From Klebsormidium nitens (lineage: Eukaryota; Plantae; Klebsormidiophyceae), in the NCBI GenBank assembly GCA_000708835.1, contig DF236960.1, positions 152,982-216,981 of the forward strand: a stretch of DNA of 64,000 nt, read 5' to 3'. The position numbers and the translations under genes are program-made. The notes under the pieces are model-generated. The model had not been told where the DNA came from, did no database searches, and was given only the letters and a program-made list of their open reading frames with translations. Numbering within the stretch: position 1 is the stretch's first letter; every line of letters starts with the position of its first letter. Shown here in pieces: positions 43,260-64,000 of this stretch.

Positions 43260-44739
43260 TCATAGTAACTACTTTCTTTGACTTTCTGTAGTGCGGAACA
43301 CGAGAGGCTTTGCCTCAATACATGAGACGATTGAAGAGCTACGTCTCTCGAGATGCTGGTACTTAGGCTCAGGCTCTTGGCTTGGAAACCTAGTCCGATC
43401 AATTGATTTGAAGAGCGCCGCATGCTACATGCAAGCATGCCCTGCTTCGACCTCCATTGTTAGCTAGTATCATACCATGTCGTTTGAACAATGGAAACGA
43501 AAGCCTGGCATTGAAGAACGACAAATGTTATCACAGTATGCTACTATAGTATGGGTCAGGCGCATCGTCCGCTACTAGTCTCTCTTTGTAGAACTTAATG
43601 ACGTACCGTTGGCCCGGCCGTGGGATACTGCATCATTACAACCCTTCAACTTACTCATGACTAAGGCCGCCACGCGCAGGCTGCATGGCCGCCGTGGCAC
43701 CATGAGTCATTTGAAAGCGCATGCATGCATATTTTAGGCGCCGCAGATTCAATTCCACATGTATTTTATAAACGTAGACGACAATAACTTAGACCAGCAT
43801 CAGCTAGACTCACATATATATCTACATATATGCACGTGTAATTCCGCCCTGCAACTTACTCATCTTTCACTCTAGCAACTCATGAAATTTGACAGACTTG
43901 GTACCCGTACGTACCCCACGCGACTAATCATGGTGCCATAGTAAAACCAACGCTGCGCTGCAATTATTCGGGCCATGGTCAATCAAACTGATCAGTGATG
44001 GCGTGACGCCGGCATCGGCGGCCCTTGCTTGCGCAAATTTCAGTGCAACCAATACTTGTCGCTGAGTCTGACCAGAACTAGCCAGGCTAGAGCTGGTCAG
44101 CCAAGTCGGAAGTCACCATTGAATCAACCAATCTACCAAGATCGATTACTTTGGCCGGCAGCGGTGGTGCTCAGTGTGTTCTGCAAGGTTCTGATTCGGA
44201 TGATACGATCGTGCGACGGTCTGGTCCCGGCAGCGGCGCGACCGCGCGCCGCCGCAGGGGCACATATGTTCGGACATGGCATGTTACTGTAAAGCAGCTA
44301 CTGTAGTTGCACCGGCTTCAGATCGTGAACATAGGAGCTCCGACTACGGTCCCAGCCTGGCAGGATGTCGCATGATGGGGTTATTGAGTCTTCTTCGGTC
44401 CTGCCAAGCATCAATCTGATGTGTTTATACGCGATGGAATCCATGGTGAACGATCGCTTATGATGCTCTCCGGAACAAGGACCACGTATCTGGCTGCATC
44501 AGTGCAAATGGCGCAGCATCGAGTGATATGCAACGCGGTCGAGGCTGCTCCTACCAATCCTTCGGCCGGGAAGGCAAAAGCGCTGGCAGAACCAAATCTC
44601 TACACATGACATACGTCGTCAATTCTGCTCATTTAGTCCCCCTTCCTGTCAGGCCTGCGCGATGACAGTCGCCACAGTTGCCGAAGCGCCTGATAGCTTA
44701 GGCTAAACGGCGGTAGTGCCAAAGCCTTGCCCTTGACGG

Positions 44740-45070
44740 CGCCTCCGGTGCCCTTAACCCGCGTTAACCCGCGCACACGGTGCGCTCACGTCACGAGACC
44801 GTCCTGGCCGGGTTCGCACCGATCTGCGCGCGCGCGTCGGAGGACCGTCCTGGCCGATGTGCGCAGATGTGTGCGCGCGTGTCAATGGACCTTCCTGGCC
44901 GGTTCGCACCGTCCTGCGCGCGCGCCCCCCTCCCTCCCATTTTCGCCGGGCCGCTGGCGTGCGCCGCGACCGTGCGGCGCATCGATCACGGACGTGTCCC
45001 CAAAGTGAGGGAGCAAGGTCCCGCCGACGGCTTCTAGGAGAAGGCGTCACCACGTCACGCATCCGCGAAT
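44740..45070. repeat. GC-rich block with GACCGTCCTGGCCG / GGTTCGCACCG repeats, possible TE subterminal region
   Basis: gacc(g/t)tcctggccg x3, ggttcgcaccg x2 and (CG)n runs. Confidence 0.55.
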
Positions 45071-48000
45071 ATTAGAGATGTACGAAACTGCGCAAAAGGG
45101 AAACGGAGGTTACATTGCTCATTTTTCCTGGGAAGGTCTACAGCTGGCATGGCTTCGACGTGCCATCGCGAAAACTTGGAGATCCAAAGTGGGATGTGAG
45201 AGACCGGTCGATCGATAACGGCAAGACAGGTAGTTCAATGATGAAAGAAAGCGAGCGCTTTGAAGTCTCCGGCACCGTTTCAAAAAAGTAGCCGGGCCGG
45301 AGGAAAGAACATAACACCGGCGAGATTTGTGCTATACACGTGAAAAGCCAGCCGTTGTCAGCTGGCCGCTCCGAAGATAAGCCAAAGGACACCCAATACG
45401 CTATTCTCCAAACCTTTGACAGGCGTGCTTTTTTCCAAAAGGAGCTTTGAGATTGGAACGAGTCTCAGTTCAACCACGAACGGCAGAGTCTGAAAACATC
45501 ACAGAAGTTGTTCTAGTGACGGCCGCGCGCCTGTCATTGCAAAACTGCTTGAGTAGGTTCTAACACTATATTGCTCGATTCCCGGAAGCAGAGTTTTGAG
45601 TCGCACGTGTTGTGCTCACCTGATCCTTACGAGTTGACTGTCTCTGTACGGGCTCGCGGACTTCAAAGTTCGTCTGAAAATGGCGCGCACTTCATCCCTG
45701 TTGCTCGGGTTCCAAGCCGAACGGTATATACGTACATACTGTGACCACTCGGCGATGGTGATGTTGGAATGGCAGGTCTGCAAACGCCGAGACGCCAGGT
45801 TGGCTACAGTCTCCTTCTTGTTGCGCCTCGAACGATCCATCGCAGAGGACGTTCCGTTGCTGGGTTGAACGGTGAAAACTGGAAAGGAAAAGAAGGGCAG
45901 AAGTCTTTGAAGGACAACCGGTAAAAACAAGCTTTTTGAAGATTAGTGACATTACCGCTCTCAAAACAATCTCATGACCTGTTACATCGAGGGATCTTAA
46001 GGCAGTTGGGGACGTCTTTGTTCAATCTGAGTCGCGATGAGCCGGTAGATTGGGACGTTCTCGAGCTCCAGTGCCACTGAACCAAGACAACATGTGATGA
46101 GCGGCAAACAATTAAAGAGCGGCAGAACCGAAGAATCAGCTTGTACAGTTGGCTAATACTTTAATCCGCGCTATAGAAGAAGCTGGTTTGAATTCCTGAC
46201 ATCTTCTTGTTCGTCACGACTTCCAAGGACGCGCTCAAATCGGAGTTCCTCAGGCCAAGGATGAGACTCATGACGTGTGGGCTTTGATATCTGGGTTTGC
46301 TGATATGGAAATTCTCTTGTACCACAGATTGAGCTTATAAGATTCAGAGGAAGGGGCGTATGTGTTGAGCGCCTTTTGCATCCTGATGACTCCTAATACG
46401 GAGCAATGAGCACGTCTTCACAGAACGGTCGGGTAATCTATCGACGAAGGGCAGACTGTTTGCTTAGGCAGCTGAATTGAACCGGTCACTTGTCCAGTGG
46501 AAGGGTACTCATAACCCAGCCTCTGGAAAACCCAATTCCTGCGCGTCATTTCGAGCCAAGCTAGAGCCTTGCGTGGAGTCCAAACCCACTTCTAGTTTTC
46601 GATCATACTGTTGAATTGTACACTGGTCAGACATGCTCGTTTCTCCGTGTCCTTTGTCAAGCGCTCTGTCCTCTTACCTCCGAGTTTTGACCTCTGGTTT
46701 CACCACGGCAGACTAAACAAGAAACAAAAATGGAGCGCTTCAAGATGTTCAGAGAGTGCAATCATGGAAAGAGCTGACCAATCCAGTTGGACACAAGTCC
46801 GAAGAAGAACGTGCCGTGCAGACAGGGTGGTTCTAAATAGGTCGAGGACTGCTTCTACGCCATCAATGGCTTCCCTCTACTTCTTTGTGAGTACGGGACC
46901 GATTCCAAACCTATCTGGTACTTTAGAAGTGGTCTTGGATGACAATCTTTTCTACAGATCACAAAGTCGTCCATTGGTTTCTGGTGGGGCGGGGCTTCGT
47001 ACTAGAAACGAGCAGTGGAAGATCAAAGCCGCTAGAGGGGTCACAGCAGCTCCAATCCCTCGCAATTGCCTTTATTTGTTGCTTGGCTTATAAAGCAAAA
47101 AGCACAAAAGACAGGGCAACGTTTTCAAGAGCATTCCGTTGGGTTGAGGTTCTTCTCCATAAAAGATCCAACCCTCGAGAAGCTTCTTTACTTCTCCTAC
47201 TTGATCTTCGTTTCACTCCTACTTCCTCATCCCTCTACCTCTACCCCTACTGAAAACATGCAAATTACTGGAAAACATTCAGCACCGGACGTTTCTTTCT
47301 GCTCTGTGGCCGGGCTTGGCATTTGGGTTGAGGATCTAGAGAAGCAAGAATAGAATCTGCTAAACTTTTCAAAGCCAATCGTTCTTACCGTCTACTTCTT
47401 TGTTGTGCACGACGTCCGGAACAATCTATCCTTGTCGAGCCCCCTGGATCAAGTGGGCGACTCTGCAAGCACAAGCCGCCGTCAATTGCAAGATCCAGCT
47501 CAACCTGAAGCTCATTGCGCCAGGATCAGTGGGGAATTCCTTGCTTAACTACAAAGACACTGCTTCCCAAGTGTGGGCTGATACCCATGATCCATCCGAT
47601 CAGCCCGGCTTCTCTCTATAAGTCCTCTCCAGCTCTTTGCTTTCTGCCCAACTATTTTCTCCCTTAAGTTTTCCTCCAAGGAACTCAACAGAAATCGAGC
47701 CATGGGCGAACTGTCCATTCTCTGCCAAAAGGAAGACGACTCCGCTGGTTTCCAAAGCCCGGACCGGACGCTCACAGCGGCGCCTCTAATCCGATTATCC
47801 TGATTGCATGCTTTTCTTGCCCACAGAAGCCTTCAATGGTAATCATCTTCCTGCGACGCCTCTGATTCGTCCAATCTGTCCAACGAATATGCTGATTGCA
47901 CCTTTCTGTATCTTGGTCCCCCAACCGTCGTCAGAGCAGTTATGAACGTACATAAGCTATCCGAAAAAGGGGCAGAACACTGGCAACCTCCGGACAGGCT

Positions 48001-48541
48001 TCTTACCCGCCATTTCAATTGAGTCCTGAATAGTTTTCGGAGAACTGATCAATCCTCTCAAGATGCTCTCACCGGCGCAGCTCACACTCTAGTTTCCGAC
48101 TTGTGCCGCGGAGCATTTATGGCTGCTGTCAGATGCAATCCTCAGTTTCCGGTGAAAGCCCGCCGAAGCAAAGACCTTTTTGATGATGGTCATCGGAACC
48201 GAATCATTCATCATCTTGAGGTGGCAAACAAGACTCCAATGCTAAGAGGATCATCATCGTCAGTAGGGACGGGGAGCTGGGAGGGAGAATTGAGCCTTGA
48301 GCTCTAATCGTCTTCAATTTGCAAAACAGGTTCATTAGTTCTCGATCAACAATGCACAATCATACGGAATTGAATGTTGAATCATCAGACGTCTATAACC
48401 TGACGAGTATACCGGTAGCAGGAGCTAAACAATCTCAGCTTCTAAAAGAAGGCACTAGAAAGATATGGAGGAGAATCTGACCAGGTTAGGAGGAGCAGTT
48501 CAGCTCCGCAGTAAGAGATTGACATGCAGATTGATCTGAAC

Positions 48542-48923
48542 CAATGTTCGTGGCGAAACTAATTCTTTTCGCCAATTTGATTTTCGCCAGATTTTCGCCA
48601 TTTAGTGTCTGGGAAGGGAATTTCGCCGGCCTGGCGAAAATGGTCAGGCCGTCAGCCAGTTCTTACATGCTCGGGTGCTCCCACCCGCTTTGACGAATCT
48701 TAACCCTGCTCAGAACCCCGTACTTTACCTTTGCCTTGCACATTTTCAAATGACTCTCCAGAGACAACGGAAAAACTTGGTCGGTACAAGAAGTTTTGGT
48801 GCCGGGACACTCTACCGGCCACAATTGCCGCTGGGATTTTCGCCATTAGTGTCATTTTCGCCAATTAGTGTCTGGGAGCTCCTATTTAGTGTATTTCAAG
48901 ATTTATTTTCGCCACGATCACTG
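48542..48923. mobile_element. Non-autonomous hAT-type MITE (382 bp)
   Basis: Terminal inverted repeats CAATGTTCGTGGCGAAAC / TTTTCGCCACGATCACTG. Perfect 8-bp TSD ATCTGAAC at 48534-48541 and 48924-48931. About nine subterminal TTTCGCC motifs on either strand. An 8-bp TSD with CA..TG ends is characteristic of hAT. Confidence 0.88.
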
Positions 48924-48974
48924 ATCTGAACGTCCTTCTGGCTTGTTCTCCAGCTGCTATACCTGCCAGCTAGC

Positions 48975-49325
48975 TATGCCATCGGAGGTGCTATATACGT
49001 ACGCTGTCATGTGCTTCCGGCTATATGCAGTTCCATACGTCCAAGGCTTGATCAATTGCTTATACATGCTTGACGGCTTTGGAACATCTCTACTGCTCAA
49101 ATGGGGCTGGAACCTCTCTAGTCCTAGCACATGTCCTTAGGGCGGCTGCTACATTTCCCGCCTATACCATCTGAGGGTGCTATAGCTATACGTAAGTCGC
49201 TGTCATGTGCATTCGCCTATATGCAGTTTCATACGTCCAAAGCTTGACCAATTGCTTATGGATGCTTGAGGGCTGTGGAACATCTTTTAAAGCTGCTCAA
49301 GGTCAAAGGAAACAGTAGTCCTAGC
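48975..49325. repeat. Diverged tandem duplication (~185-bp unit x2)
   Basis: cgctgtcatgtgc..ctatatgcagtt(c/t)catacgtccaa(g/a)gcttga(t/c)caattgcttat..atgcttga.ggct.tggaacatct...tagtcctagca occurs twice. Confidence 0.85.
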
Positions 49326-51448
49326 AGCCAAAAAAATGCTTGGAAGACCGTTTCTTCCAGCTGCAATCTCTGATGGCTACTGTTGCCATCACCGGTTTCA
49401 GCTCGCTGACATGGCCAAGACTCTGCGCTTTCCTGCAGTGATCTGCAAGTGTCCCACAGGATGATCTTAGTAACCATTCTATGACGTCTTTGAAGCTTTG
49501 TTGCCAGCTTGATAGGCGTTGTTTCCATTGTAGAATGCTATCATGCATATTCCAGCTCTGAAAAGACCAGAGAGGTAATCGGCTGACGTCATTGACCAGC
49601 TTAGTGCTCACTTGGACGTATCAAAGGAACCGTTCTGATGGGAAGTACTAGAGTCATCTCGCCTCCTGAAATTACGAGCGTACCACTTCACATTCAGCTA
49701 TGAGCTTTCACCGTTTTCCAAGCTGAGAGTCGGAACTGTCGCCTCTCTGAACTCTGAGTACTCTCAGGCTAGCTAGTCTCAGGCGGTTATCGGCTCAAAG
49801 AGTGCGGCCGGCTGTTCGGCGCGGCCGCACCCAACTTGCGCACTGAGGCAACTCATTACTAACTTAGCGGCCGCGTCGGACTCGGCTGGCGGCCGCCCGT
49901 GCGGCCGGCCGCCAAGCTGCCGCCCGCGGGCCGATAAGTTATGACCGTGCAATTATTGCACTTTGGCGAGGGGTCGGAGACTCGCCGCTCGGAGTTGCGA
50001 ATTCCTGACATGCAGCCGGCAAATGCGATGCCTACCGTACGGTATTAGGTGTGCAGCAGGTGGCATGCAACTCAGAGCGACTCACATTGGTGAATCTCCG
50101 GCTGCTAAAGACGACACGAAAATCTCGTTCGGAATAATCACGTTCACGTTGGACTACGGTACCGTATACCCACCTCTTCGACTGAGCGCTCAGGAGTCAG
50201 CGGGGCAAGCCGCAAAAGTTGCGCTTGTGTGGTGCATGATGGACTCCGGGTGCGCCAAATAAGGGACCAGCAAGCATACCGGTCGTACCCTCTGGGACTC
50301 GAAGTCAATAGGCTATCGCCGGCGTCAACTTTTATTTTGTCGCGCCAGAGTTCCGGCATGCATCCCAGCTGGGGGTATCAGGAAAAACAGACTGGGAAGT
50401 CCTAGATGCTTTGATCGTATATGCTCATCTGTTATCGTTTCAAACCGGCTAGGATTTGCCGGTCCTGGCAAGAGCTTATGATCCAAAAGTCGCTGCATGC
50501 AGATCGCGGAGTTGAGTGTACCGTACGTTAGTGTTGTGCCATTGGTACGGTACTCTAGTCCCAATCCGTTGGAGCACAAGGAGAAGTACCTCTAGAGGTA
50601 GAAAATGAGCCTCCTTTGAGCTCCCACCTTTCAATCACAGCTGTACAAATGTCAGGTAATTTTGTTGCAGTACACATTGGCAGTGCTGCGGAACCTTCTA
50701 ATATTGCAGATATTTTTACGAGCTGACATCGGACATAGCGCCTGCAAGCTGACGCAAGCCCGCAAGCTGACGCAACTTGTCTCGAAAGTAACTGCAAATA
50801 AATGCTGGGATACCCCGCGGCTCGCGGCCAGTTCCTCAGCTTGTTGCTCTTCTTGCAGAATACGCAGCCGTTTTTCATAAGAGAATTCAAGCCCTAGAAG
50901 CCCATCGCCTATGAACCTCTATAAGACGCATGCTGGGCATCCAGCTTTACAACGACTCCGAATGCGAGCAGGATATATGTGGGAATATCCAAACCACGTT
51001 CCATCCAAAGACATTGCAAGGGTGACGTTTAACCGAGCTGCTATTCTACCAGTAGTACGCCAAATCACCAACGAAGCTGGAAACTGGTTAAACAAAGCTG
51101 GTAGGAATGATGAAGGCAGCTCAAGGAAGAAGTGTGACTTCCAGCCCACTTCCAGCTGCGGCCTCCGACCATCATAGCATTTCAGCACGCGCAGTACATG
51201 TTGCAACTTGTCTCACATGCAATGGGGGAAATTCGAATATCATTGCGCTTATGATCAGCTCAGCTCTCATAAGCAGAGTCGCTCCCTGCAATGCGGAGTA
51301 GCTGCCACGCAAACGCCCAGCCCTAGACGTGACTGCCCCTTCCTCTATCCTAGCCTTAGAGCTGAATCACAGCCCAGTCTGATAGCATTCCTCTTGCTCT
51401 CAGCTCGGATCCTGCTTCCACATAGGTATACAATCCCCAAACCTGCCC

Positions 51449-51455
51449 TATAAAA
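51449..51455 (+). promoter_or_regulatory. TATA box of the secreted repeat-protein gene
   Basis: CCCTATAAAAC about 95 nt upstream of ATG 51546, which is in a good context (GCCGCCATGG). Confidence 0.7.
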
Positions 51456-51545
51456 CACAATCGCATCCGGCCACATTGCACATTCGCTCAGAACTCCAGC
51501 AGCCAGCTCCCCAGCTCCAGAGGCCACATTCCCCAGCTAGCCGCC

Positions 51546-54500
51546 ATGGCTTCTGCTCTGCGCCTCTCGCTGCTGTTCATCGCCTCCGCCGCGGTCCTGT
51601 CTGGCGCCGCCGCGCAGCAGATCAACATCCGGGTTAACGTGCAATGCTTGAACGTGCTGGACAACAGCCAGATCGCCAACATCCCCGGGCTCAATGTGGG
51701 TGTGATCCAGGTCATCGCGGCGGCCCTCGGCGGGCCCGGCCAGGCGCCGTCGGCGCTGTTCTTCAACAGTGAGTTTCGCAGTCTTGCGCTGGACAGATTG
51801 TGGATAGTGTCTTCAGCAGTGGACTGAAATTGGGATTCTAGGGTGTATTTGATTTTCTGGGCTGCACTAGTAGCTATGAGTGGTATGGAAACACGCTCTG
51901 ACTTGTGCAAAGCTCGCAAGCTTCTGATCTGGTCACTAGGGCGGGTTGTTCCTCTTCTGGGTGAATTTGATTTCCATTCCGAGCCCGGCCTCGGAAGATT
52001 TCATCTGTGGCTGAATAGGAGTGGGCTTGAAGTTTCTGGATGGGTAGGAGTGGGACTAGTACTTTCTGAACAGTGGATTTTGTCACGAAATGTGTGAAGT
52101 TGGATAAGCATGCATGTGAGAATTGGGTGGTTGAGAAGCGGTGACGTCAAGCTGCTCAGTATGGGAATTCCAAGCAGCCTGCTCATGGCATCTCTCCCCA
52201 TGTTGAGCTGTGGACTTTTCTAATCACAGACGAAATATTGAGGCTTCCGGCTGAGTGCTTGCATATCAAGTTCGGCTTTCTGAGCAGCCAGACTCCTTAG
52301 GCCAACAACTCACGTCAAACCCGCTATTTACCCTGTTCAGCGTGCGCTAACCATCCCTCCGCGTCTCCCTCGCAGGCGGCAGCAGCACCAATAACTGCAC
52401 CAACAACCAGAACTTCAACAGCAACTCCACGTGCAGCTCCGCCATTGGCCCGATCAACCTGGGCGTCTTGGGACAGGGTACTCTCATCCCTTGCTTCAAT
52501 CAGCCTGCTACCCCCGCCCCCACCGCAGGGGGCCGCAAGATGCTGCAGCAGGTTAACGTTCCGGTTACGGTTCAGTGCCTTAACCTGCTGAACAACAACC
52601 AGATCGCCAACATCCCCGGGCTCAACGTGGGCATCATCCAAGTCATCGCGTCCGTGCTCGGCGGTCCCGGCCAGGCCCCGTCTGCGCTGTTCTTCAACAG
52701 TGAGTCGCTTGGCTATGCTGCAAATTTTCACCGACACAATCGCTGGTCTTCTGCATGTCTGAGCTGGACTTATGTCACAGATGCAGAAAAAGTCAATGTA
52801 AAGAATGCACACTGTAGCTATTGCTAAAGCTGTGGTCTTTCAATCGTGTAAGTGTATGAGTAGAACGTACCTGGCTTCACACAATGAAGTCAAATCTTCG
52901 CTCGTGCTTTAAACCCATCATCCTTGGGGTGAAGCATTGTTCGGCCTTTACCGGAAGTCTTCAGGAGAAATGTGCTAGGTTCTATTGAGTACCTGGAATC
53001 GGATTTGTAAGGAGTGCGATGACCCTTCAGTCACCAAGCATTTAAGAACATTCTAAGCCGTCCTCTTACTCCTCTCGCGCAGGCGGCACCAGCACCAACA
53101 ACTGCACCAACAACCAGAACTTCAACAGCAACTCCACTTGCAGCTCTGCCGTTGGCCCGATCAATCTGGGTGTTCTTGGCCAGGGAACTCTTATCCCCTG
53201 CTACAACGCGCCCGCCACCCCCGCCCCCACCGCCGGTGGCCGCAAGCTGCTGCAGCAGGTTAACGTCCCGGTTACGGTCCAGTGTCTTAACCTGTTGAAC
53301 AATAACCAGATCGCCAACATCCCCGGGCTGAACGTGGGTGTCATCCAGGTCATCGCTGGGCTGCTTGGCGGGGGTGGCCAGACCCCGTCTGCGCTCTTCT
53401 TCAACAGTGAGTTTCTCAAAACTACTTCGAAGTGTCCATTCGCTAGCTTATCTCTTTGATGTGTCTGGGGCCCATTTCACGATCTGTGCACCTCATGTTC
53501 TGCTCGCTATCTCAAATGGTTAGTGGCGAAAGTGACAAGTTCTTAGCTCCGCAACACTCTGTTGCTAGCATATTCTTTCATCAAAACCAAGTGTAATTCA
53601 GCAATCAGTCATTCTGCAACGGTTTTGCTGAACATTTCGACTTGTGCCTTTGACTTCTGAGCAGAACAACAATATTCTGCACTTGCCGTGCGACACACAC
53701 TGTGACATTCTCTGTGACTTGTCTCGATACTTATTCTCTGTGACTCGTCTCTCAGACCGAACATGAACGCAACGAAAACGAAAGCGCAGTGACTGATCCG
53801 TCTTCTTTGTCCCTCGCAGGCGGCACCAGCACCAACAACTGCGTCAACAACCAGACCTTCAACAGCAACTCCACCTGCAGCTCCGCGATCGGTCCCATCA
53901 ACCTGGGCGTCTTGGGGCAGGGCACTCTCATCCCTTGCTACAACCAGCCCCCTGCCGGCGGCCGCAAGCTGCTGCAGCAGGTTAACGTGCCGGTTACCGC
54001 CCAGTGCGTTAACCTGTTGAACAACAACCAGATCGCCAACATCCCCAACGCGATCGTGCAAGTCATCGGAGTTGTCGCCGCGGTGGGCGGTGCTGGCCAG
54101 GCCCCGTCCGCCATCTTCTTCAACAGTAAATTTCTCGCACCTTGTCTAAAAGCTTTTGTATAGTTAAAACCCGTACCAAAGACTGTACTGACGTCCAATC
54201 TCATGCTTCGTGTTCGAGAGCTGTTTTGACGAAGAGCTTTGTCAGATTGGATATGTCTCTTGGATAAGACGTAATTCTGCAGAGCGCCTAGTCTTCCTAC
54301 TTGGTCAAGTTTTTCCATATGAATATTTTGAAAGCTCCGTCGGCAGTAAATGACAGTGGTCTTCCAGTCTACAGAGCGTCCGGTCACATATCACTGTTGA
54401 TAAGTGTAGCTTTTTGTAGCAAGGAGTAACGATCTGTTTTCCTCGTCCAGTGTGCAAACTTATTCACGCCGCCTTTCTTGTCTTGGAAACGACAACTGTT

Positions 54501-55545
54501 CAGAGCCCAAATCAGGTGACATAGTCTGTTACTGTGAAGTCTTTCTCTACGTAAACTCGACATCTCTACGTAAACTCGACATACTCCGATTCCAGCTGTG
54601 AACTAATTCTCCACATCTCTTGATCTCTTTCTTGCTCACCTCGCAGCCGGCACCAGCACGAACGACTGCACCAACAACCAAGACTTCAACAGCAACTCCA
54701 CGTGCAGCTCCGCCATTGGCCCCGTCAACCTGGGCGTTCTCGGCCAGGGCTCTCTCATCCCCTGCTACAATGAGCCCCCCGCCGGCGGCCGCAAGCTGCT
54801 CCAGCAAGTCAACGTGCCCATCACCATCCAGTGCGTGAACCTGCTGAACAACAACCAGATCCTCAATCTCGCGAACCTGAATGTGGGCGTCATCCAGCTT
54901 ATCCTGTCCGCGCTGGGCGGTGGAGGCCAGACCCCGACCGCCGTCTTCTATAACAGTGAGTCGCACAGTAACCTGACTACTCATGTTCGCGAATTTCGTA
55001 GCATTTGGGTGGTCGTTGTCCAAGCTGTGGTAGTGTGGTATCTTCTGCAATCAACCTTGACGATGATCAAACCTTAGTTTGCCGGCCCACCTTCTCTACA
55101 TATGCGCACACTACTTGCACTTTGGCACCTTCCGAACTGTATACAAATACACTCAGAAACATGCAGAGCAAATCGAAGTTCGAAGTTATCAACTGCATCT
55201 TTCATTCCGAAACGCTTTCAGAAATATGATTCACTCTTCTTGCTCGAAATGCTTTCGGAAATGTGATTCACGATTCTTGCTCTTCCCCAGCTCGACACCC
55301 ATTGGCGTTGGAATTTTTTGATCTAGAGAAAGCGAAGAATTCCTGTCTTTTGAGTGTACTTGCTCTGACACTTTGGATCCATCTAACCTACGGTGTTCAC
55401 CCGACTCGTTTCAGCCGGCACCTCCACCAACAACTGCCAGAACAACCAGGAGTTTACCAGCAACAGCAACTGCTCCTCCGCAGTCGGCCCCGTCAACCTT
55501 GGCGTTCTCGGCCAGGGAACTCTCATCCCTTGCTACGGATCTTGA
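51546..55545 (+). CDS. Secreted polyprotein: signal peptide + five Asn/Gln-rich 4-Cys modules separated by RK(L/M)L sites (~538 aa, 6 exons)
   Basis: Exons 51546-51768, 52376-52699, 53083-53406, 53820-54125, 54647-54955, 55415-55545; all introns are phase 1 at the same position in the repeat. Signal peptide MASALRLSLLFIASAAVLSGAAA. Module consensus QQVNVPVTVQCLNLLNNNQIANIPGLNVGVIQVI..LGG.GQ.PSALFFN(S/T)GTSTNNCTNNQ.FNSNSTCSSAIGPINLGVLGQGTLIPCYN..(linker)GGRKLL. Strong C-ending codon bias. Confidence 0.9.
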
Positions 55546-58279
55546 ATGCACATCTCTTGTGGTAGACTTAAATATTTTCCTACGCTGGAAGTAGATTGCA
55601 AACGAGATCGTCAGAAGTGTGAGGAGACGAAGAGAGTGACATTTTTGTCACGGTCAAAATTGATGGTATACGGCTTTGGAAATGGAATAAAGACGGAACC
55701 TGTCTGCGTAGAGGTAGTGTACATGCCCGCTAACGGAGCGCACGCGTAGACTTGATTCGATAAGCTGTTACATGACGACAAGGATTAGGGTAGGGAAGAC
55801 CCCCTGCCCGTTCCGATTTTGAACGTTAGTGTACGATCCGTTTTTGTTAGAAACACTTGACATCATTACAACAGAATGCTCTGTAAAACACCCGTGGAAT
55901 GAACTTTTGTTAACACAGTCACACGTGGACGAATTTCGTACGTGAGTATGGTGATACACCGCATTCGCCACTTCTTTCAGCATAAAAGCCAATATGGGCG
56001 TGCTCATACAATCGAAATTTGTATGAGCAAAAGTAGTTCAATGAACAAACGTGGCATATCAATCGTAGCCTGAAAGAATTGTCTTGTAACAACTTCGTGG
56101 AATATGATTGTGAAATGTCACAATGTTCTCATCGTGCCTACATTTGACAGTGCGTATGGTTAAACATGTCATCCAACACTGTCTGACGACCAAAATGGAT
56201 ATCTTTGACTTACATGTCAAACGTCAGATTGAAGGGATAACCACAGGTTGTCCAGATGAGATACTACGTACGACATTTACAAATCTATTTGGCAGTACGC
56301 ACCACTGGATCTGAAGAATGTTAATACCTCGCACTTTCACTTAGAGGTGTCCATTCAAATCTGCACCAGACCTACTTTTATTACTTTCCTGCTTCTGCTC
56401 TGGCGTTTCAGCCGGAATCTACTCTCGCCCTTCCGTACCGTTCTGCTTCCAAATTTCCGCCCAGCCCGGCCAGGCTCCCACCCCACCACCGCCCGCAGAA
56501 ACCGACGTCCCTCGTCTCCCTGAACTTCGCACCTGCCGACTCGGAATTGCGCGCGCGAGCGTTCCTGGCATGCCCGGTGCAGTCCACCGACGTGAAACGT
56601 GCCTCGCCGCCCCATAGCTGCCCACCGCAAGGTTGACATCACGTTCAAGGGGGGCGAACCAAGCAGAGGTTGTAGCCCCCCTCTGGGGCTACCCCTAAAA
56701 CCAGCCACGTCCCTTTCGGGCTGCCGACCGGAGCAGAATTCGTTGGAAGGCTAATTTGGCTTCTGCAGAGGGGGGAAACCGAAGCGGGAAATTGCCCCCC
56801 AGCGAGAGGCAACAGTTGACTTTTGGAACTTTCTCGGGGGGCGCTTCGGCCCGAGACCATGACCCCCCGCTCGTTCCCTGCTCCTGCGCACCCGGACTTC
56901 CGATCCCTAAGAGGCATTTCTGGCCGAGTTGTTTTCGAAAGGGATGAAGCAGGCGGATCGAGAAGCGGGCCCCCGGTCAGAGGTGGGAGCCCGAATGAGA
57001 TCTTTCAGGGGGGCGATGTTGACCGGAGGTCGGCCCCCTCGCTAGAAGCCCACGACGTTCGCTGAAACTGCGGACTGTCCAACAGGTTCCGGACGCAGGA
57101 GTCGACGTCCCCGGACAGAATGCTGTCCCAGTCTAGTTGCGCTAAGGTCCTCCAGGCTTTGCTTCGTGGGCTCTCCCCTCTCTAGTTCTTCTTTCTCCTT
57201 TCCCTTTCTCCGGGTCTTCACTGTCCGATCCCCTCCACTCTACTTCTCGCTTCATCCGTTCTGCCGTTGGTGGGTCTTGATCCGATCTCCCTCTCCCTTC
57301 CAGTCCCCCTTCCAGTTGTTCTCTCGCTTCCAGTTCTTCTTCCCTCCGTGTTCTCCCATCTCTAGTTCCTCTGTTCGCTCTCCCTTCTCCACCTCTCCTC
57401 TACCCATCTTCTTTTCCGCTGGCTCTTCTCCGCCGCCCTTCAGGCCCGTGCTTGTTTCCACTGACGGGTCACCCTCAAAGGCATCCACAATTCCAACGGC
57501 CGGTTGCCAAAGCTTCCATTTCGGTCCAGTCTTGAATCCTGTTAAGCCCAATTACACGGACCCTCCTGAGATCGAGGATCTCCAAGTGAGCTCAACATCA
57601 TTTAGCGAATTTTTCTTTATGCAAATTCTCAGGTAACGTTTGCATCGCCCCTTCCATGCAAGGCAAACGCCTCTGAGCTTCGTGTGTGAGCTGCAGCCAT
57701 GACGTCAGAGTATCTATCTTCCGACGCAGGAATCTGTTGCCAAACGCTTGCTTAACATTATGCAAGAAGAGGTCAAGAGTCTCGAACCAAATCCTGAGGA
57801 AGGGCTGTTTCGGATGGTCTCAATAAGTCAAAGACTCGAGTCGTGGCTGAAGCGATGCAGGAGCACTCCGACCTAGAGCTTCGTTCAATTTGCGCTTAAG
57901 CCTTCACCTACCTGACCTCTTTTCCAGAACTATTACCACAATTCAGCCTCCTGTTTTTTTCGAGGTGACTTGCCTGTGGTCCAAATCATGTCCATTCAAA
58001 CACTTCCTTCTACCAAGAACAGTATCTTAAAAAAAGTCCATCATATCTTATTGCGTGTTTCTTTCTACTTCATCAGAGCGACTTACGTAAAAGGAAGTCT
58101 AATATCATTTTTCTCTTGAGTCACACTGGCCTTCGAACCTGTCGTCTACCGTCCCCTTATACCGAACCGGCGTTCACTGACGCCCATTCCGCAACGGACG
58201 CAGTCACTCTGCGCTCATTGGACATCCTGCGCTCTGCGGACGCTTTACGCTCTGCGAACGTCCGTTTCTCAGTGGACGC

Positions 58280-58440
58280 AAACCCTCCGCTCATCGGCCG
58301 TCCGTTCCTCACCGGACCCAGAAACCCTGCGCGCATCGGACGTCCGTTCCTCGACGGAATCAAACCCTCCGCTCATCGGACGTCCGGACCTCACCGGACC
58401 CAGAAATTCTGCGCTCACCGGACGTCCGACGCTCTGCGAA
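58280..58440. repeat. Degenerate ~42-bp minisatellite
   Basis: c(c/g)gc(t/g)catcgg(a/c)cgtccg..cctc(a/g)ccgg units, about four copies. Confidence 0.75.
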
Positions 58441-60539
58441 CGGTGGCTCCCCCGGAGGAACCACCGTTCAGGGGGACGTTGTCGGGGCAAACCTGGGGAG
58501 AGTCAACATACCAAGATTCTACCAGGGAAAGACTAACAAAGTCAACCCCCGAAGAATTTGCCGACCAGGTTTGTGTTCGGGAAAGGCCATCTCGGTTAGC
58601 CTCAGGAGAAGCAACCGGCCAAAGTTTTGTCGGGGAAATACCATCCGAGTCGGCCTCGGCGGAAATTACCGACCACAGGAGCGCTTCCGCGTTCAAAAGA
58701 TGGCAGGGAGCTGTCTTCTAGTTGCCCGGACAAACCACCGGGCATCGGAGGGAGCTCTCTAGAGCTTGAGCTCCGCTCGCGCCCAGGGCAAACCGCCCGG
58801 CTCAGTCCCCCGGGCTCGAGAAAAGTGGTAGAGGGCGAGAAAGAGGAGTAATCGCACGAGGAGCGAGCACAGGCGACTGAGGTTACAAGCCAGCCGGCAT
58901 CTCAATCGCCTGTGCGGGCTCCTTCTTCGGAAGCCCTGGTGCCTCTCGGTCGTATGAGGCCGAGTGACTGAGCCGGGCACTTTTGCCCTGGTCACGAGCA
59001 GAGCGAGGGATCCCTCAGCCGGGGAACCTTCAACTGGGCGAACGCTTGGGCCGTACGGATGAGGCTCCGATTGGCGAGCAGCCATTTTCGGGCGGATCTC
59101 AGCGAGCAGACATTCAGATGACAGTGAAGTGACTTACGATCCGAATCCCCAGAAGGTGCCGTTTTTAACAAGGGAGTGGTTGCTTCTGCTGAAAGGACTT
59201 CGCAGTCCTCAGAAGACGCGGCCGCCCCGCGCACCGTGCGCGGCGTACCAAACGCGCGCGCGCGCCGAAAACCTCGCGCTTGAAGGATGGAGGGCTGTCA
59301 GAAGGCAACGGAAGCAGGGGTGTCCGACGTCAGGGACATGATCCGGTACTGGTCAGGGTCGGGCCGGACGCGGATTCCGGAAAGGTTGCAGGCGACAGAG
59401 GAATCAGAACCGAGAGCGACGCCGATCCTGAGGGGAGCGAAAAGCGTTAGGTTCAGGGAGAGGAACGCCCAGCGGAGTCCGTTGGGAGCTTGTAGAAAAT
59501 GGGCCGGAATGATCCGGCCTCAGCTGCCGACTTGGACGTTTCAAAAGGCCTTTTGAGTGGAGAAGCCCGGACGCCGTAATCGCCGTTGGGCAGGCAAGAG
59601 ATGGACGAAGAGAGGGGCCTTCTGGGCTTTCCGAGGAAACCGGAAGGGAACGGGGGGAAGCTGAAAACGCAACGGTGCGAAGGCACGTCGGAAAGCATCA
59701 ATCCGAAAACAAGAAGTTGCTTATCAAGGGAGTGAAGAGATGGCAGAGCCACGTAGCGGTAGCGGTTCTTCAGAAAGCGAGGAATCGACAAAGACACGTG
59801 GCAAGATAAGAGATCCGGAGAGGGCCCTGCGCGCGCTTGAAACAAAGAGCGCGGACGGAAACGAGATGGCCGGCAGTGGTTAGCCGGTGGGACACGTGGC
59901 ACCAGCACAGGACGCTTACGTAGGTGCCTTAAAGGCCCAGGGTGCCAGTGCTCGGGAGGAAGAGACCGGTCACTCTGCTGCAGAGGAAGTAAGCCGGAGG
60001 ATGGCCGGTGGGGAGCTACCGGGGGTGGGAATGAAACAACGGAAGCGGAGAATGGAGATTGGAGTGGAGAAGGCCGCGAATAACGAGGACGTGGCAGAGC
60101 GGAGCGTTCCGGTCGCAGTAAAAGCAGCGAAATTGCAGAGGACGGAGGCGGCCGGGAACGGCGCAAAAACGGCGGAGCGGAGCGTTCCGTTCGCAGGAAA
60201 AATAACGAAACGGACGGAACAAACTCTGGGACGTCTCGCTGTCTCCGCGAATCTGAGAACGACCCGCGGGGCTACTGGTGCTGGGTCCGCGAGACGAACT
60301 GGAGGCCTTTGAGTTTGAGACCTGGGACGGGAATCTGGACGGAACGGAACCCTTTCCGGCGGAACCTGAATCGGAAGTGCGCGACGTATGTGGAAGCATC
60401 ATTCAGGATTCTGGTGAGAGAGTCAGGCTGGATGAACACTGTTTGGTTGAGACCGATTTGGGCGGACTTATCAAACGGAAGCGGTGTGGACGGAACGGTT
60501 GTGAACGGAGTCGTTGTGGGCGGAACAGTGGCGGTGGAA

Positions 60540-60900
60540 ACAGTGTGGCCGATGGAGGCAGGGACGGAACGGAGTCGGACGGAACGAGGTCGGACGGAAC
60601 AAGCCTAGACAGAACCAATCTGGACATAAGGGTTTGGATGAACCTAGTGTGGACGGAACCAGCCTGGACGGAAATAATCCGGACGGAACTGCTTTCGGCG
60701 GATCCAGCTTGGACGAAACCAAACTGGACGGAACCAATCTTGGAGAAAGCAGCCAGGAAACAACCGCTTTGGATGCCAGATTGGACAGAACAAGCTCAAC
60801 CATGGCCAACGCGATCGGAACTATCTGGGCGGAACCAGCTTGGACGGAAGCAGCCAGGCCGGAAGAAGGCGTTTGGAACGGAAACGTGTGCGGCAGAAGT
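60540..60900. repeat. Degenerate 15-bp minisatellite (GGACGGAACCAGCCT-like)
   Basis: Repeated ggacggaac cores at ~15-nt spacing, reading (xxLDG/DGT)n in one frame. Confidence 0.75.
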
Positions 60901-63833
60901 GGGCCGGAATCTGGCGGAACGTCCTCGTCGCAGAAGCTAAAGTTGGAAGGGGGTGCGGAGGAAAGGGCCGTGTCCGCGAGGAAGGCGGAACGACGTTCCG
61001 CCGCAAAAGCGGAAGCTTCCGCCATCGCAGCGGACCTGCCGGAGTCCGAGCAGCTCTGAAGCAGGTCATGACACGGATGACTAGCAGTGGGGAGCGGGTT
61101 AAGGTGAGGCTCGTTGGCGCGATTATAATTATTGCGTGGAGGAAGTCTCGACAACCAGCAGTGTTTGGATAGTTGTGTTACAACGAAGATAACTGCCTGT
61201 CTTGACATTTCAGAGGTCGTCTATCGCTTACACGGTTAAAGTCAAGATTGTTCTGTTTGAAATTCAACCCTCAGGAAGTGTACCGAAGGGCTGAAGTGCT
61301 AACCAATCCGTAGAGCTTGAAGCCTTATGATTGAAGAGCACTTGTTGCGTTCAGTCCGAAAATTTTTCTGGATTGTTGCAATAAGATCGGTTCGCGTGGG
61401 TGCTGCAGACCCAGGCAATCCCAAGCCTACTTCTGTGACTTACTATCACGACACAGTGATCATGACCCCCATTCTGTGTTGCATGATAGGCGTTACAGTT
61501 CCAAACCTGAGCCTAGCCTCTACTTACATACGTACTAGTATACAGCGATTGAGCGTTTCCAAAACTTCACCATCTACCGGTATAGCTGGGGAGAACGACA
61601 ACCTTGCCCGGCTTGGCTTCGTCCCGAGCAAACATTACCCTCCGCCCCAGGCTACTCAACGGGACAAACACGACTCCCTTGAGCTTCTCCGTGTTGCCTA
61701 TCAGCTCAGCCCCGCTTTCCAAGCGACTGACTGGGCCCTTAAAACCCTTCACCTCGGCTGCTCGCACTGTGTGGTTAGCCAAGGTACCAGGCTATACAGA
61801 CACCACCCCTTGTTCCCGCAGTTTTCTGGCTTCTCAAGCCCGGCCTCGACCACTTTTCCGCACTCCACGTGGGCCACGTGGGTCCGTCTTTCCGCATCTT
61901 TATCCAACACCCTCCGCCCTTTTCCCCGATCGTTTTGAGGCGCTCGCAGTATCCCATGAAGAACGCCCCGTTTTTTGAGTCTTCGTATTTGCAGCCTTGG
62001 AACCAGCACCGGTAGCAGGGAATGAAGGGGCTCACGGCAACGAATTCGTCCATGGCGTTGAGTTCTGGCCAGCGTGTCCGTTTGCACCCTGAACAGAATC
62101 GCGCGGTGCTGAACCTCGTTGTGCAAGAAGCTATCCCTGAGTTTAACTCCTCCAGACCGAGCACCGGCTCTGTGATCAGAGAAACGCGGTGACGAACTTT
62201 CCAAAACATCGCTTCTTTGTTGAGATTATTGATCTCTACGACGCTCCATCGGCCTCGAAAATATGGAAACGAAAGTCAGGGTCCTGGTTGGAAGGTCTTT
62301 TCAGCTTTTTTCAGCCTTCGTTTTCAGTTTAAATGTTTACTGCAAGCAGAGTTGCCGGGGGAACTAACGCTGACGGCAGGAGAGAAAACAATCTCTCATC
62401 CCGAAGCGGGCGTCCGCATCCGGGGGGCGAAGTTTGGATGGAAATGAGAAAGTGAAGACAACGCCACGAGCGACGAGCGGGAGCGGAAGAGGCAGCAGCT
62501 GAATGAAACTCTCTGCGAGCGGAACAAGGCGAGCGGAACAAGCCGATGACTGGAAGTACTGAAAAGCAGCGGAACTGGACTAAACATAAACGTACTACGA
62601 CTGGATGCGGGCGGAAGTCAAAGCCGAGCAGGAGGTTATGCATACAGGGGCGGACGAAAGGTTCTCAGGGGCGATACGGAGGTCGGACGGATCGAACATA
62701 CGGGCGGAAGCAAATGGATATCGAACGGAAAGGAGGGACGTGTCGTTCCGCGTCGCTGTTCGCGGAACGGCGCGGACAAGAACGCACGGCCGGAACGGAA
62801 CGAAGCTTTGGAGCAGAAAAGAACGTCGTGCCCAAGACGGCAAAGGTCGTCGAGCCTCAGGAGCTTGAAGCAAAACGGAGAGGACACGGAAGAATACAAC
62901 AGAGTGTGAACGGGCGGTCACTGCCCGTGCCACCCGAGGGGATCACCAAACAGCGCATGCAGACGGTTACGAGAATTTGGAGACAGGTGCCAGCAACTTC
63001 AAGAAAATAATCCCAGAGGCTGCGAGAGGGAAGCTGATTAAGAGTAACCCGTTGAAAGCGGAAGCAAGCGAACGCTGAACAGGTTCCGAAATTTTTTATT
63101 GAGAGTTAGGTAAAGGGACCCGGGGGGGGGGAGAAGGAGCAGAAAAAGTAGATTGATGTGAGGGACAAAAAGATGGGAGCCGAAGAGAACTATAAGGACT
63201 TGTGTCGATATCAATCTGGAACTGGTACTACATGGATTCCAAACTTCTCCGCCCGTGCTGTTGAATCGACAGCGCGGTTGGGCGTTCCAGATCATTTGAG
63301 GAGCATCAGATACCAACCTCTCTCCCAGAAATTATAGGAAGTACTAAGTAGCGGCGCGTGGTCCAATCACTTAAATTTCGCATTCAGCCGGTTTCTTACT
63401 GTCATCTTGAGGCGGTATACAAGACACCTCGAAAGGTAAGCAGTCGCTGCATGACGCTCGATCCTGGCGTCAACAATAGGAACAGAGCTCTTCTAAGATG
63501 ACATCAGCGGACCGCACGCGCAAAACAACACCTTCTGAAGGCGAGTAGAACCTTGACGGGGCGGCCTTGCACGAAGTCGTGCCGGAACCCTCTAGATTCT
63601 GATAGCAAAGATCAGAAACCCCAAGAGCGGTCGGAGATTGCTCACCGTCTTCCAGCCGTGCATGAAAGTAGTCCTGCAGCATGCCGGAGAAGTAGGGGTG
63701 CGCGTCGACCGAAAAGCTGCAAAAAGCTTCCCAGTTTTCTTAGCCAATCGGATGGCTTTGAAGATCCACGTGGTAGACCAAGGTACATAACCAGAGGAGT
63801 AATATGGCCTGAAAAGGACCGTACCTCCTACCT

Positions 63834-63950
63834 NNNNNNNNNNNNNNNNNNNNNNNNNNNNNNNNNNNNNNNNNNNNNNNNNNNNNNNNNNNNNNNNNNN
63901 NNNNNNNNNNNNNNNNNNNNNNNNNNNNNNNNNNNNNNNNNNNNNNNNNN
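63834..63950. other. Assembly gap (N run)
   Basis: 117 N. Confidence 1.
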
Positions 63951-64000
63951 CGCGCAACCTAGGGCGCTAGCCTAGTGGGGCTCGCTCGGGCCGTGCAAAA

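Follow-up and report, generated by a model that had tools for sequence, protein, structure and literature searches.

The DNA analysed here is a 64,000-nucleotide stretch of the Klebsormidium nitens genome (the window; contig DF236960.1 of assembly GCA_000708835.1). Within it lies KFL_000110180, a gene whose product is best explained as the precursor of a secreted repeat protein that belongs to a lineage-restricted orphan family and is cut into its individual modules. We assign this overall explanation a probability of roughly 0.6. That the product is a secreted orphan repeat protein is nearly certain. Cleavage of the chain at its RKxL motifs, the step on which the explanation turns, is probable in light of the junction sequences found across the family. 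Coordinates are positions in the window unless stated otherwise.

Joining six exons on the plus strand (51546-55545) gives an open reading frame (ORF) of 1617 nucleotides and a product of 538 residues. The translation is identical, letter for letter, to the K. nitens protein annotated as 'hypothetical protein' (P0011, which is KFL_000110180), located at 204527-208526 of scaffold DF236960.1. A predicted signal peptide occupies residues 1-23; it was recognised by eye from its basic residue, its hydrophobic core and the AAA at positions -3 to -1. It is followed by five modules (residues 24-131, 132-239, 240-342, 343-444 and 445-538), every one of which has exactly four cysteines, at module positions 11, 59, 71 and 91 and with no CC pair. 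Modules 1-4 close with a Pro/Gly linker and either RKML or RKLL, one of the four borders being GG-RKML|QQ and the other three GG-RKLL|QQ. Module 5 closes with PCYGS and the stop codon. The original prediction, made from the letters of this DNA, had described a signal peptide and five homologous four-cysteine modules after splicing, a basic motif exactly at the unit boundary, and a fifth module with neither linker nor RKLL; the annotated gene model and the 538-residue product bear this out. Its estimate of about 95-104 residues per module was approximately right, the actual range being 94-108 residues with the linker included and 94-104 without RKxL.

The K. nitens modules carry very little charge. 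The mature chain has five Arg, four in the RK pairs and one in module 1, and four Lys, all in the RK pairs; these counts agree with the earlier statement that basic residues are nearly confined to the four pairs. There are three Asp and two Glu, no His and no Trp, and Asn makes up 15.5% of the residues. Modules 2 and 3 lack Asp, Glu and His altogether, and their Lys and Arg occur solely within RKLL. Each module is also a diblock, with a mean grand average of hydropathy (GRAVY) of +0.59 in its N-terminal half and -0.25 in its Asn/Ser/Thr-rich C-terminal half, a pattern consistent in 22 of 22 modules across the family. The border between the hydrophobic and polar halves coincides exactly with the intron position: each of the five introns of KFL_000110180, all of them GT..AG and all in phase 1, splits its module at the equivalent point, after ..F(F/Y)N. 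Phase-1 introns at this mid-module point allow the number of modules to change through exon duplication or loss.

The case for processing comes from comparison of the junctions. Scanning all fetched loci, we collected 22 RKxL-Q junctions from four K. nitens paralogues, environmental cDNAs and one metagenome contig, including the propeptides that precede module 1 in other species. Without exception, they read RK(L/M)(L/Q) followed by Gln. The original prediction had staked itself beforehand on conservation of RKLL in homologues, and conservation is what the junctions display. Gln is likewise the invariant first residue in all 22 complete aligned modules. The remainder of the linker varies in both length and sequence (PATPAPTAGG, PPAGG, PENGG, AGGN, AAGHK), with the RK(L/M)(L/Q) end held constant, and the linker is the least confident stretch of the AlphaFold2 (AF2) model, with a predicted local distance difference test score (pLDDT) below 50 at residues 95-108. 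The RKLL codons are almost always the preferred CGC AAG CTG CTG, and codon variation is uninformative.

The start of module 1 is reached in two ways. A short propeptide ending in RK(L/M)L lies ahead of module 1 in K. subtile (P0001) and in the environmental proteins P0004, P0008, P0009, P0010, P0014 and P0015, where examples of the junction are ..AADSRKLL|QQ, ..AAESRKLL|QQ, ..AADRKLL|QQ, ..KERKML|QL and ..EPRKLL|QQ. The K. nitens genes have no such propeptide, and in them the predicted signal-peptidase site AAA|QQ directly adjoins the Gln of module 1. Thus, two different routes, an RKxL propeptide and a signal-peptidase site, give one predicted N-terminus. At the other end of the chain, the last module always lacks both linker and motif. 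A motif that tracks the module N-terminus and is absent after the last module is what a cleavage signal predicts and what a structural or binding role does not. The comparative data considerably strengthen the interpretation of the chain as a processed polyprotein.

The pathway that we infer, from secretion through to a function at the surface, would begin with removal of the signal peptide at AAA|QQ. A subtilase of the secretory pathway that recognises R-x-(L/M)-x would then cut after each RK(L/M)L, the best candidate being the alga's own S1P/SKI-1-type enzyme. A single translation product would in this way yield five similar modules of about 10 kDa, and the paralogues and orthologues would yield between two and five. 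The N-terminal Gln of each module could cyclise to pyroglutamate, the four conserved cysteines probably form two disulfides, and the aliphatic N-terminal half together with the polar, Asn/Ser/Thr-rich C-terminal half would constitute the diblock. The modules are most likely extracellular, in or on the wall, and an amphiphilic, possibly self-assembling coat is the leading idea for what they may form.

If the chain is cut before Gln, the basic pair falls at P4-P3. RxxL/RxLx is the recognition motif of plant S1P/SBT6.1 (AtS1P), and RALF23 is cut at RRIL|A (PMC13082318). RKLL itself is a processing motif of the pro-regions of Arabidopsis pectin methylesterase (PME) precursors (bioRxiv 10.1101/2022.07.28.501549) and an SKI-1/S1P motif in nairovirus glycoprotein precursors (PMC4926184). 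The Klebsormidium junctions are of the same kind, with RKLL, RKML or RKLQ at 22 of 22 positions, set inside variable Pro/Gly linkers of low pLDDT. In a survey of subtilases, the K. nitens protein GAQ86362.1 is listed in the supplement as Peptidases_S8_SKI-1_like, and the reported occurrence of SBT1-5 is limited to Coleochaetophyceae, Zygnematophyceae and embryophytes (PMC6713707). Given the reported absence of SBT1-5 outside those groups and the listing of an SKI-1-like protein, S1P is the available candidate among the plant-type subtilases that use RxxL. The original prediction had drawn the analogy with S1P substrates; the motif is a documented one, and an S1P-type enzyme is reported for K. 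nitens in the survey. We judge the chances to be about even that S1P is the enzyme that would cleave the chain; other proteases are possible.

KFL_000110180 is a real gene under selection. Its modules match one another at E values of 1e-35 to 1e-59 (tblastn), with synonymous divergence (Ks) of 0.43-0.81 between modules and a ratio of nonsynonymous to synonymous divergence (Ka/Ks) of 0.13-0.54. Compared with each other, the five introns share no alignable sequence. The low Ka/Ks, the substantial Ks and the unalignable introns therefore indicate that the repeat is old and under purifying selection, rather than a recent duplication or an artefact of assembly. Transcription and splicing of the family are documented through the RNA of relatives. 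Contigs from three related samples and one plant-associated metatranscriptome are confined to the exons, and their joints match introns 2, 3 and 5. In addition, one two-module orthologue is present in two forms: a 55-kb metagenome contig (L007) has it as a gene of three exons, with intron positions equal to those of KFL_000110180, and a polyadenylated metatranscriptome contig (L008) has it free of introns.

The plant-associated metatranscriptome (X40) has some joints of other kinds. Its contigs fuse exon 2 to exon 4 (52699>53820, GT..AG), several joints go back between exons within 52699-55503, and word depth on the exons is high, reaching about 360. These odd joints fit relatives with a different number or order of modules, or exon skipping.

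The family is small. An exhaustive HMMER (phmmer) search of 1.84 billion representative proteins returned eight matches, all of them members of the module family. Word-indexed searches, including one with the 22-module profile, added a few further members, as fragments only, and a scan of JGI metagenomes found nothing beyond one locus already known. K. nitens has four members, all on the plus strand and inside 33 kb: KFL_000110180 with five modules and, 13-25 kb downstream of it, KFL_000110220 with four, KFL_000110230 with three and KFL_000110240 with four. K. subtile has one member (P0001; EukProt EP00243), and the environmental transcripts and contigs P0008, P0009, P0010, P0014 and P0015 have two or three modules. 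As far as the databases show, the module appears to be an orphan restricted to Klebsormidium and close environmental relatives. An origin by horizontal transfer was considered and ruled out, because there are no relatives outside the family's own Klebsormidium group.

Searches for known families and folds agree with this. With exon pieces and the 22 single modules as queries, Pfam gave nothing meaningful at E<=10, the best scores being HYR_4C at 0.12 and DUF4342 at 0.92, each in only one or two modules, and no member of the family has a Pfam domain. The 22-module profile had no match at E<=10 among all PDB sequences. Foldseek of the better AF2 model, itself of low confidence, found nothing below E=1 in PDB and the AlphaFold database clusters, with all template modelling (TM) scores below 0.33. 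Membership in the hydrophobin, chaplin, rodlin, cerato-platanin-like and lectin families, and in enzyme families, was ruled out by the negative family and profile searches. The original prediction did not recognise the family and had said that similarity of the module to an enzyme or lectin domain already known would count against it; Pfam, the PDB profile search and Foldseek were all negative. Searches of the literature by locus tag, and on Klebsormidium hydrophobin and secretome topics, found no earlier work on KFL_000110180.

What the modules might do is suggested by their amphiphilic character and by the biology of the alga. Klebsormidium lacks a cutin cuticle, and some species have a water-repellent surface film (PMC4927632). 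The genus is described as forming a 'superficial hydro-repellent layer' for which 'there is no chemical evidence', and K. flaccidum (the name used in that paper) as having a hydrophobic wall layer of which protein is a major component (PMC4927632). In a comparison of protein-language-model features, chaplins (54 of the best 100 matches) and rodlins (21 of the best 100) were the nearest named clusters. On account of the diblock, this feature ranking and the reported hydro-repellent layer, the leading idea is an amphiphilic protein of the surface or wall, and the very low charge of the K. nitens modules also counts in its favour. We consider a hydrophobin-like surface activity doubtful. Somewhat less likely again is the full proposal that the four-gene cluster is the protein basis of the hydro-repellent or hydrophobic wall layer of Klebsormidium; the family would then be an independently evolved streptophyte amphiphile resembling hydrophobins and repellents, made as an S1P-cut polyprotein and serving life at the air-water boundary before cutin.

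Such a proposal would matter since Klebsormidium is a key model for the adaptation of the plant lineage to land. An orphan, secreted, low-charge amphiphilic module, encoded in two to five copies per transcript by a tandem cluster, is a concrete candidate for the hydrophobic layer. Whatever the modules do, the family is a clean natural test case of an ancient use of S1P-type processing. If our explanation is true, an S1P-type enzyme would release multiple wall proteins from each precursor in a streptophyte alga that reportedly lacks SBT1-5.

Several observations weigh against one part or another of this explanation. Regarding cleavage, one site (in P0009) reads RKLQ, which is less typical of S1P at P1, and modules 1-4, if cut after RKLL, would keep a basic GGRKLL tail that would have to be trimmed to be lost. 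Regarding the surface, the whole-module GRAVY is only about +0.15, and the chaplin and rodlin feature scores of 0.63-0.66 are far below a meaningful level. Structure prediction lends no support to any fold: AF2 gave a pLDDT of 55 and a predicted TM score (pTM) of 0.47 for one module with a 22-row alignment, and a pLDDT of 28 for two modules with a 13-row alignment, and ESMFold (the ESM Atlas model) gave a pTM of 0.28. These poor predictions may reflect the shallow alignment, and we neither claim nor exclude a fold. The diverged homologues P0008 and P0009 have a net charge of -1 to -4 per module, and the N-glycosylation sequons, of which there are one or two per K. nitens module, are absent from the diverged acidic homologues. 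Neither 'uncharged' nor 'glycosylated' is a trait of the family as a whole. Finally, in RNA of K. nitens itself (four runs, four studies) no contig fell on KFL_000110180, a result that could be a false negative; the gene may be silent in ordinary culture.

As for the original prediction, its observation is confirmed and its interpretation is partly supported. The description of the modules as uncharged stands for K. nitens and fails for the family. The likeness to hydrophobins did not extend beyond composition, given the missing 8-Cys signature, the low GRAVY and the lack of a confident fold, and the Foldseek comparison of the low-confidence model of one module, a kind of check that had been suggested, produced no match in PDB and the AlphaFold database clusters.

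The 538-residue chain could alternatively be an uncleaved multi-domain wall protein or glycoprotein, five beads on Pro/Gly-rich linkers, in which RKxL contacts acidic polymers, acts as a cross-linking or sorting signal, or is part of the fold. Wall proteins built of tandem domains on Pro-rich linkers are common, the PATPAPT type of linker may resemble hydroxyproline glycomodules, and RK, as almost the sole basic residues, could provide the sole ionic handles. Counter to this, such a protein gives no account of why K. subtile and the environmental homologues also have the motif between signal peptide and first module, why it is dispensable there in K. nitens, where signal peptidase makes an equal Gln end, or why it is constantly absent after the last module. 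We regard this alternative as unlikely, although not negligible. A silent or decaying K. nitens copy with no present function would explain the missing RNA contigs, and the paralogue KFL_000110220, with its damaged linker and lost cysteine, lends the idea some colour. With an intact 1617-nucleotide ORF, canonical splice sites, 20 of 20 cysteines and 4 of 4 motifs in KFL_000110180, Ka/Ks well below 1, and orthologues that are transcribed and polyadenylated, we give this almost no credence.

Two further alternatives concern function. The modules could be released as secreted bioactive units, either for defence (antimicrobial or anti-grazer) or for signalling, in the manner of plant multi-domain inhibitor or antimicrobial peptide (AMP) precursors or of the repeat proteins that fungi process with Kex2 (KEPs). 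The combination of protease sites with Cys-stabilised units of about 10 kDa in one polyprotein fits such a precursor, as do the tandem amplification of the gene (four paralogues in 33 kb) and expression that appears condition-dependent, absent from culture RNA and abundant in the plant-associated metatranscriptome. Yet the modules, Asn-rich and of neutral to acidic charge, differ from cationic AMPs; Pfam and the PDB profile search matched no inhibitor, toxin or hormone family; and the modules are highly conserved, among themselves and across species (Ka/Ks 0.13-0.54), which speaks against the target of an arms race. This function is improbable. We find it still harder to credit that the protein is a stress-protective extracellular one (ice-binding, anti-desiccation or water-holding), whose Asn/Ser/Thr faces would bind ice or water without forming a hydrophobic coat. 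Asn, Thr, Ser and Gly are abundant in the module, the Atlas feature matches include one ice-binding cluster (score 0.59), and Klebsormidium tolerates cold and desiccation (PMC4927632), but that Atlas score is at noise level, Pfam and the PDB profile search detected no similarity to ice-binding families, and the module contains no regular solenoid repeat.

The layout of the gene is given in Table 1. Beside the features listed there, an imperfect 21-bp direct repeat (x2.1, CTCCAG..CCCCAG; 51494-51538) lies in the presumed 5' untranslated region, a short way upstream of the ATG. Intron 4 contains a 19-bp tandem duplication (x2.1, 100% identity; 54544-54582) and intron 5 one of 37 bp (x2, 86% identity; 55208-55282).

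Table 1. Exons, introns and promoter candidate of KFL_000110180 in window coordinates
Feature	Position	Strand	Basis or remark
Candidate TATA box, TATAAAA	51449..51455	+	About 91 nt 5' of the ATG; read from sequence
Exon 1: predicted signal peptide (51546-51614, residues 1-23) and hydrophobic N-half of module 1	51546..51768	+	GT donor at 51769; RNA contigs from relatives confined to 51549-51769
Intron 1, 607 nt, GTGAGT..CAG, phase 1	51769..52375	+	RNA depth zero in transcriptomes of relatives
Exon 2: polar C-half of module 1, linker, RKML (52534-52545), N-half of module 2	52376..52699	+	Splice model and motif scan
Intron 2, 383 nt, phase 1	52700..53082	+	RNA joint 52699>53084 in metatranscriptome X40
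Exon 3: C-half of module 2, linker, RKLL (53241-53252), N-half of module 3	53083..53406	+	Splice model and motif scan
Intron 3, 413 nt, phase 1	53407..53819	+	RNA joint 53406>53820, GT..AG, in X40
Exon 4: C-half of module 3, linker, RKLL (53963-53974), N-half of module 4	53820..54125	+	Splice model and motif scan
Intron 4, 521 nt, GTAAAT..CAG, phase 1	54126..54646	+	Splice model
Exon 5: C-half of module 4, linker, RKLL (54790-54801), N-half of module 5	54647..54955	+	Splice model and motif scan
Intron 5, 459 nt, phase 1	54956..55414	+	RNA joint skipping 459 nt in X30, X35 and X40 contigs
Exon 6: C-half of module 5 ending in PCYGS, stop codon 55543-55545; no linker, no RKLL	55415..55545	+	Sequence reading and splice model

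Some public gene models in the cluster are irregular. Those of two paralogues, KFL_000110220 (L005:10001-14439) and KFL_000110240 (L001:6001-10153), have truncated or odd modules; the P0012 model has a 63-residue module and a 'GAFAGSKCQDWPHL' insert, and the P0007 model a shortened first module. Read from the genome, the first linker of KFL_000110220 is disrupted, and one of its modules has Gly in place of a Cys (..FITGY). The odd paralogue models reflect either annotation mis-splicing or a decaying copy. Between KFL_000110180 and the paralogues, positions 57252-64000 hold three genes, encoding 116 residues (minus strand), 346 residues (plus) and 335 residues (minus). None of the three is recorded with a Pfam family, and a Pfam search with the longest pieces of their ORFs was negative; they are further orphans within the cluster.

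On the 5' side of KFL_000110180, about 8.3 kb (43260-51545) has no called gene in the public annotation and is bounded on its far side by a CTP_transf_1 gene (phosphatidate cytidylyltransferase-like). Farther away, positions 20001-28000 have a raised G+C content, 0.58-0.63 versus about 0.50 in the rest of the window, and, compared with that rest, a strongly negative GC skew, down to -0.24.

Looking across known systems, the architecture has several partial parallels. In Ustilago maydis, the 11 peptides derived from Rep1 assemble on aerial hyphae into amphipathic amyloid fibrils (PMC3133707, PMC6339444, PMC7329392). Like the Rep1 repellents and KEPs, the Klebsormidium chain has a signal peptide and then tandem, near-identical units split by a conserved basic motif, a protease site in the fungal proteins and a putative one in Klebsormidium. 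KEPs are recognised by a signal peptide and at least three tandem repeats, and KFL_000110180 has five repeats behind a signal peptide predicted by eye. Those fungal proteins are cut in the secretory pathway into many copies; for KFL_000110180, of a streptophyte alga, the same is proposed from sequence. The differences lie in the site, a dibasic KR/RR Kex2 site in KEPs and RK(L/M)(L/Q) then Gln (S1P-type, with Arg at P4) in Klebsormidium, and in the units, mostly short cores in KEPs and about 100 residues with four cysteines in Klebsormidium, with no sequence similarity between them.

Closer in the logic of the motif are the RXL-processed wall precursors of diatoms (silaffin Sil1p, silacidins, cingulins and frustulins). 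In Sil1p, RXL follows the propeptide, and RRIL or RRNL ends each repeat and is removed, freeing wall-associated units (PMC4557024). In Klebsormidium, R-K-L/M similarly stands before each module and, in P0001, P0008, P0009, P0010, P0014 and P0015, after the propeptide, and RKL, at the C-terminal end of the repeat, is formally an RXL motif. The silaffin units, in contrast, are short, strongly basic, Lys/Ser-rich and silica-forming, whereas those of Klebsormidium are about 100 residues long, neutral to acidic, Asn-rich and have four cysteines; the two lineages are not related, nor are the sequences similar. Klebsormidium is not known to silicify. The plant S1P/SBT6.1 substrates (type-I PME pro-regions with RRLL/RKLL; RALF23 with RRIL) have the same class of tetrapeptide just upstream of the mature N-terminus, in precursors of secreted wall proteins. 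There, a single cut removes a pro-region, whereas in Klebsormidium the site is iterated one to four times between modules, and the proteins are not homologous.

Among surface proteins, fungal hydrophobins are secreted, low-charge, Cys-stabilised units of about 100 residues with a hydrophobic patch, and the Klebsormidium modules would resemble them in this. Hydrophobins can also occur as several units on one chain. They differ in their signature, which in PF01185 and PF06766 is the 8-Cys pattern C-CC-C-C-CC-C, whereas the Klebsormidium modules have four cysteines and no CC. The hydrophobin hidden Markov models (HMMs) matched none of the exon pieces or 22 modules at E<=10, and Foldseek, with a low-confidence model, gave none. 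The Streptomyces chaplins (ChpA-C) and rodlins are likewise uncharged, Val/Asn/Gly-rich secreted units, with a feature similarity that is below threshold; they differ in Cys number and unit length, Klebsormidium is a eukaryote, and the chaplin and rodlin HMMs PF03777 and PF25848 gave no Pfam match with the exon pieces and 22 modules. Based on these comparisons, the Klebsormidium family belongs to none of the repellent and KEP, silaffin, hydrophobin, chaplin or rodlin families, and it appears to combine the architecture of a protease-processed, secreted repeat polyprotein with a previously undescribed module.

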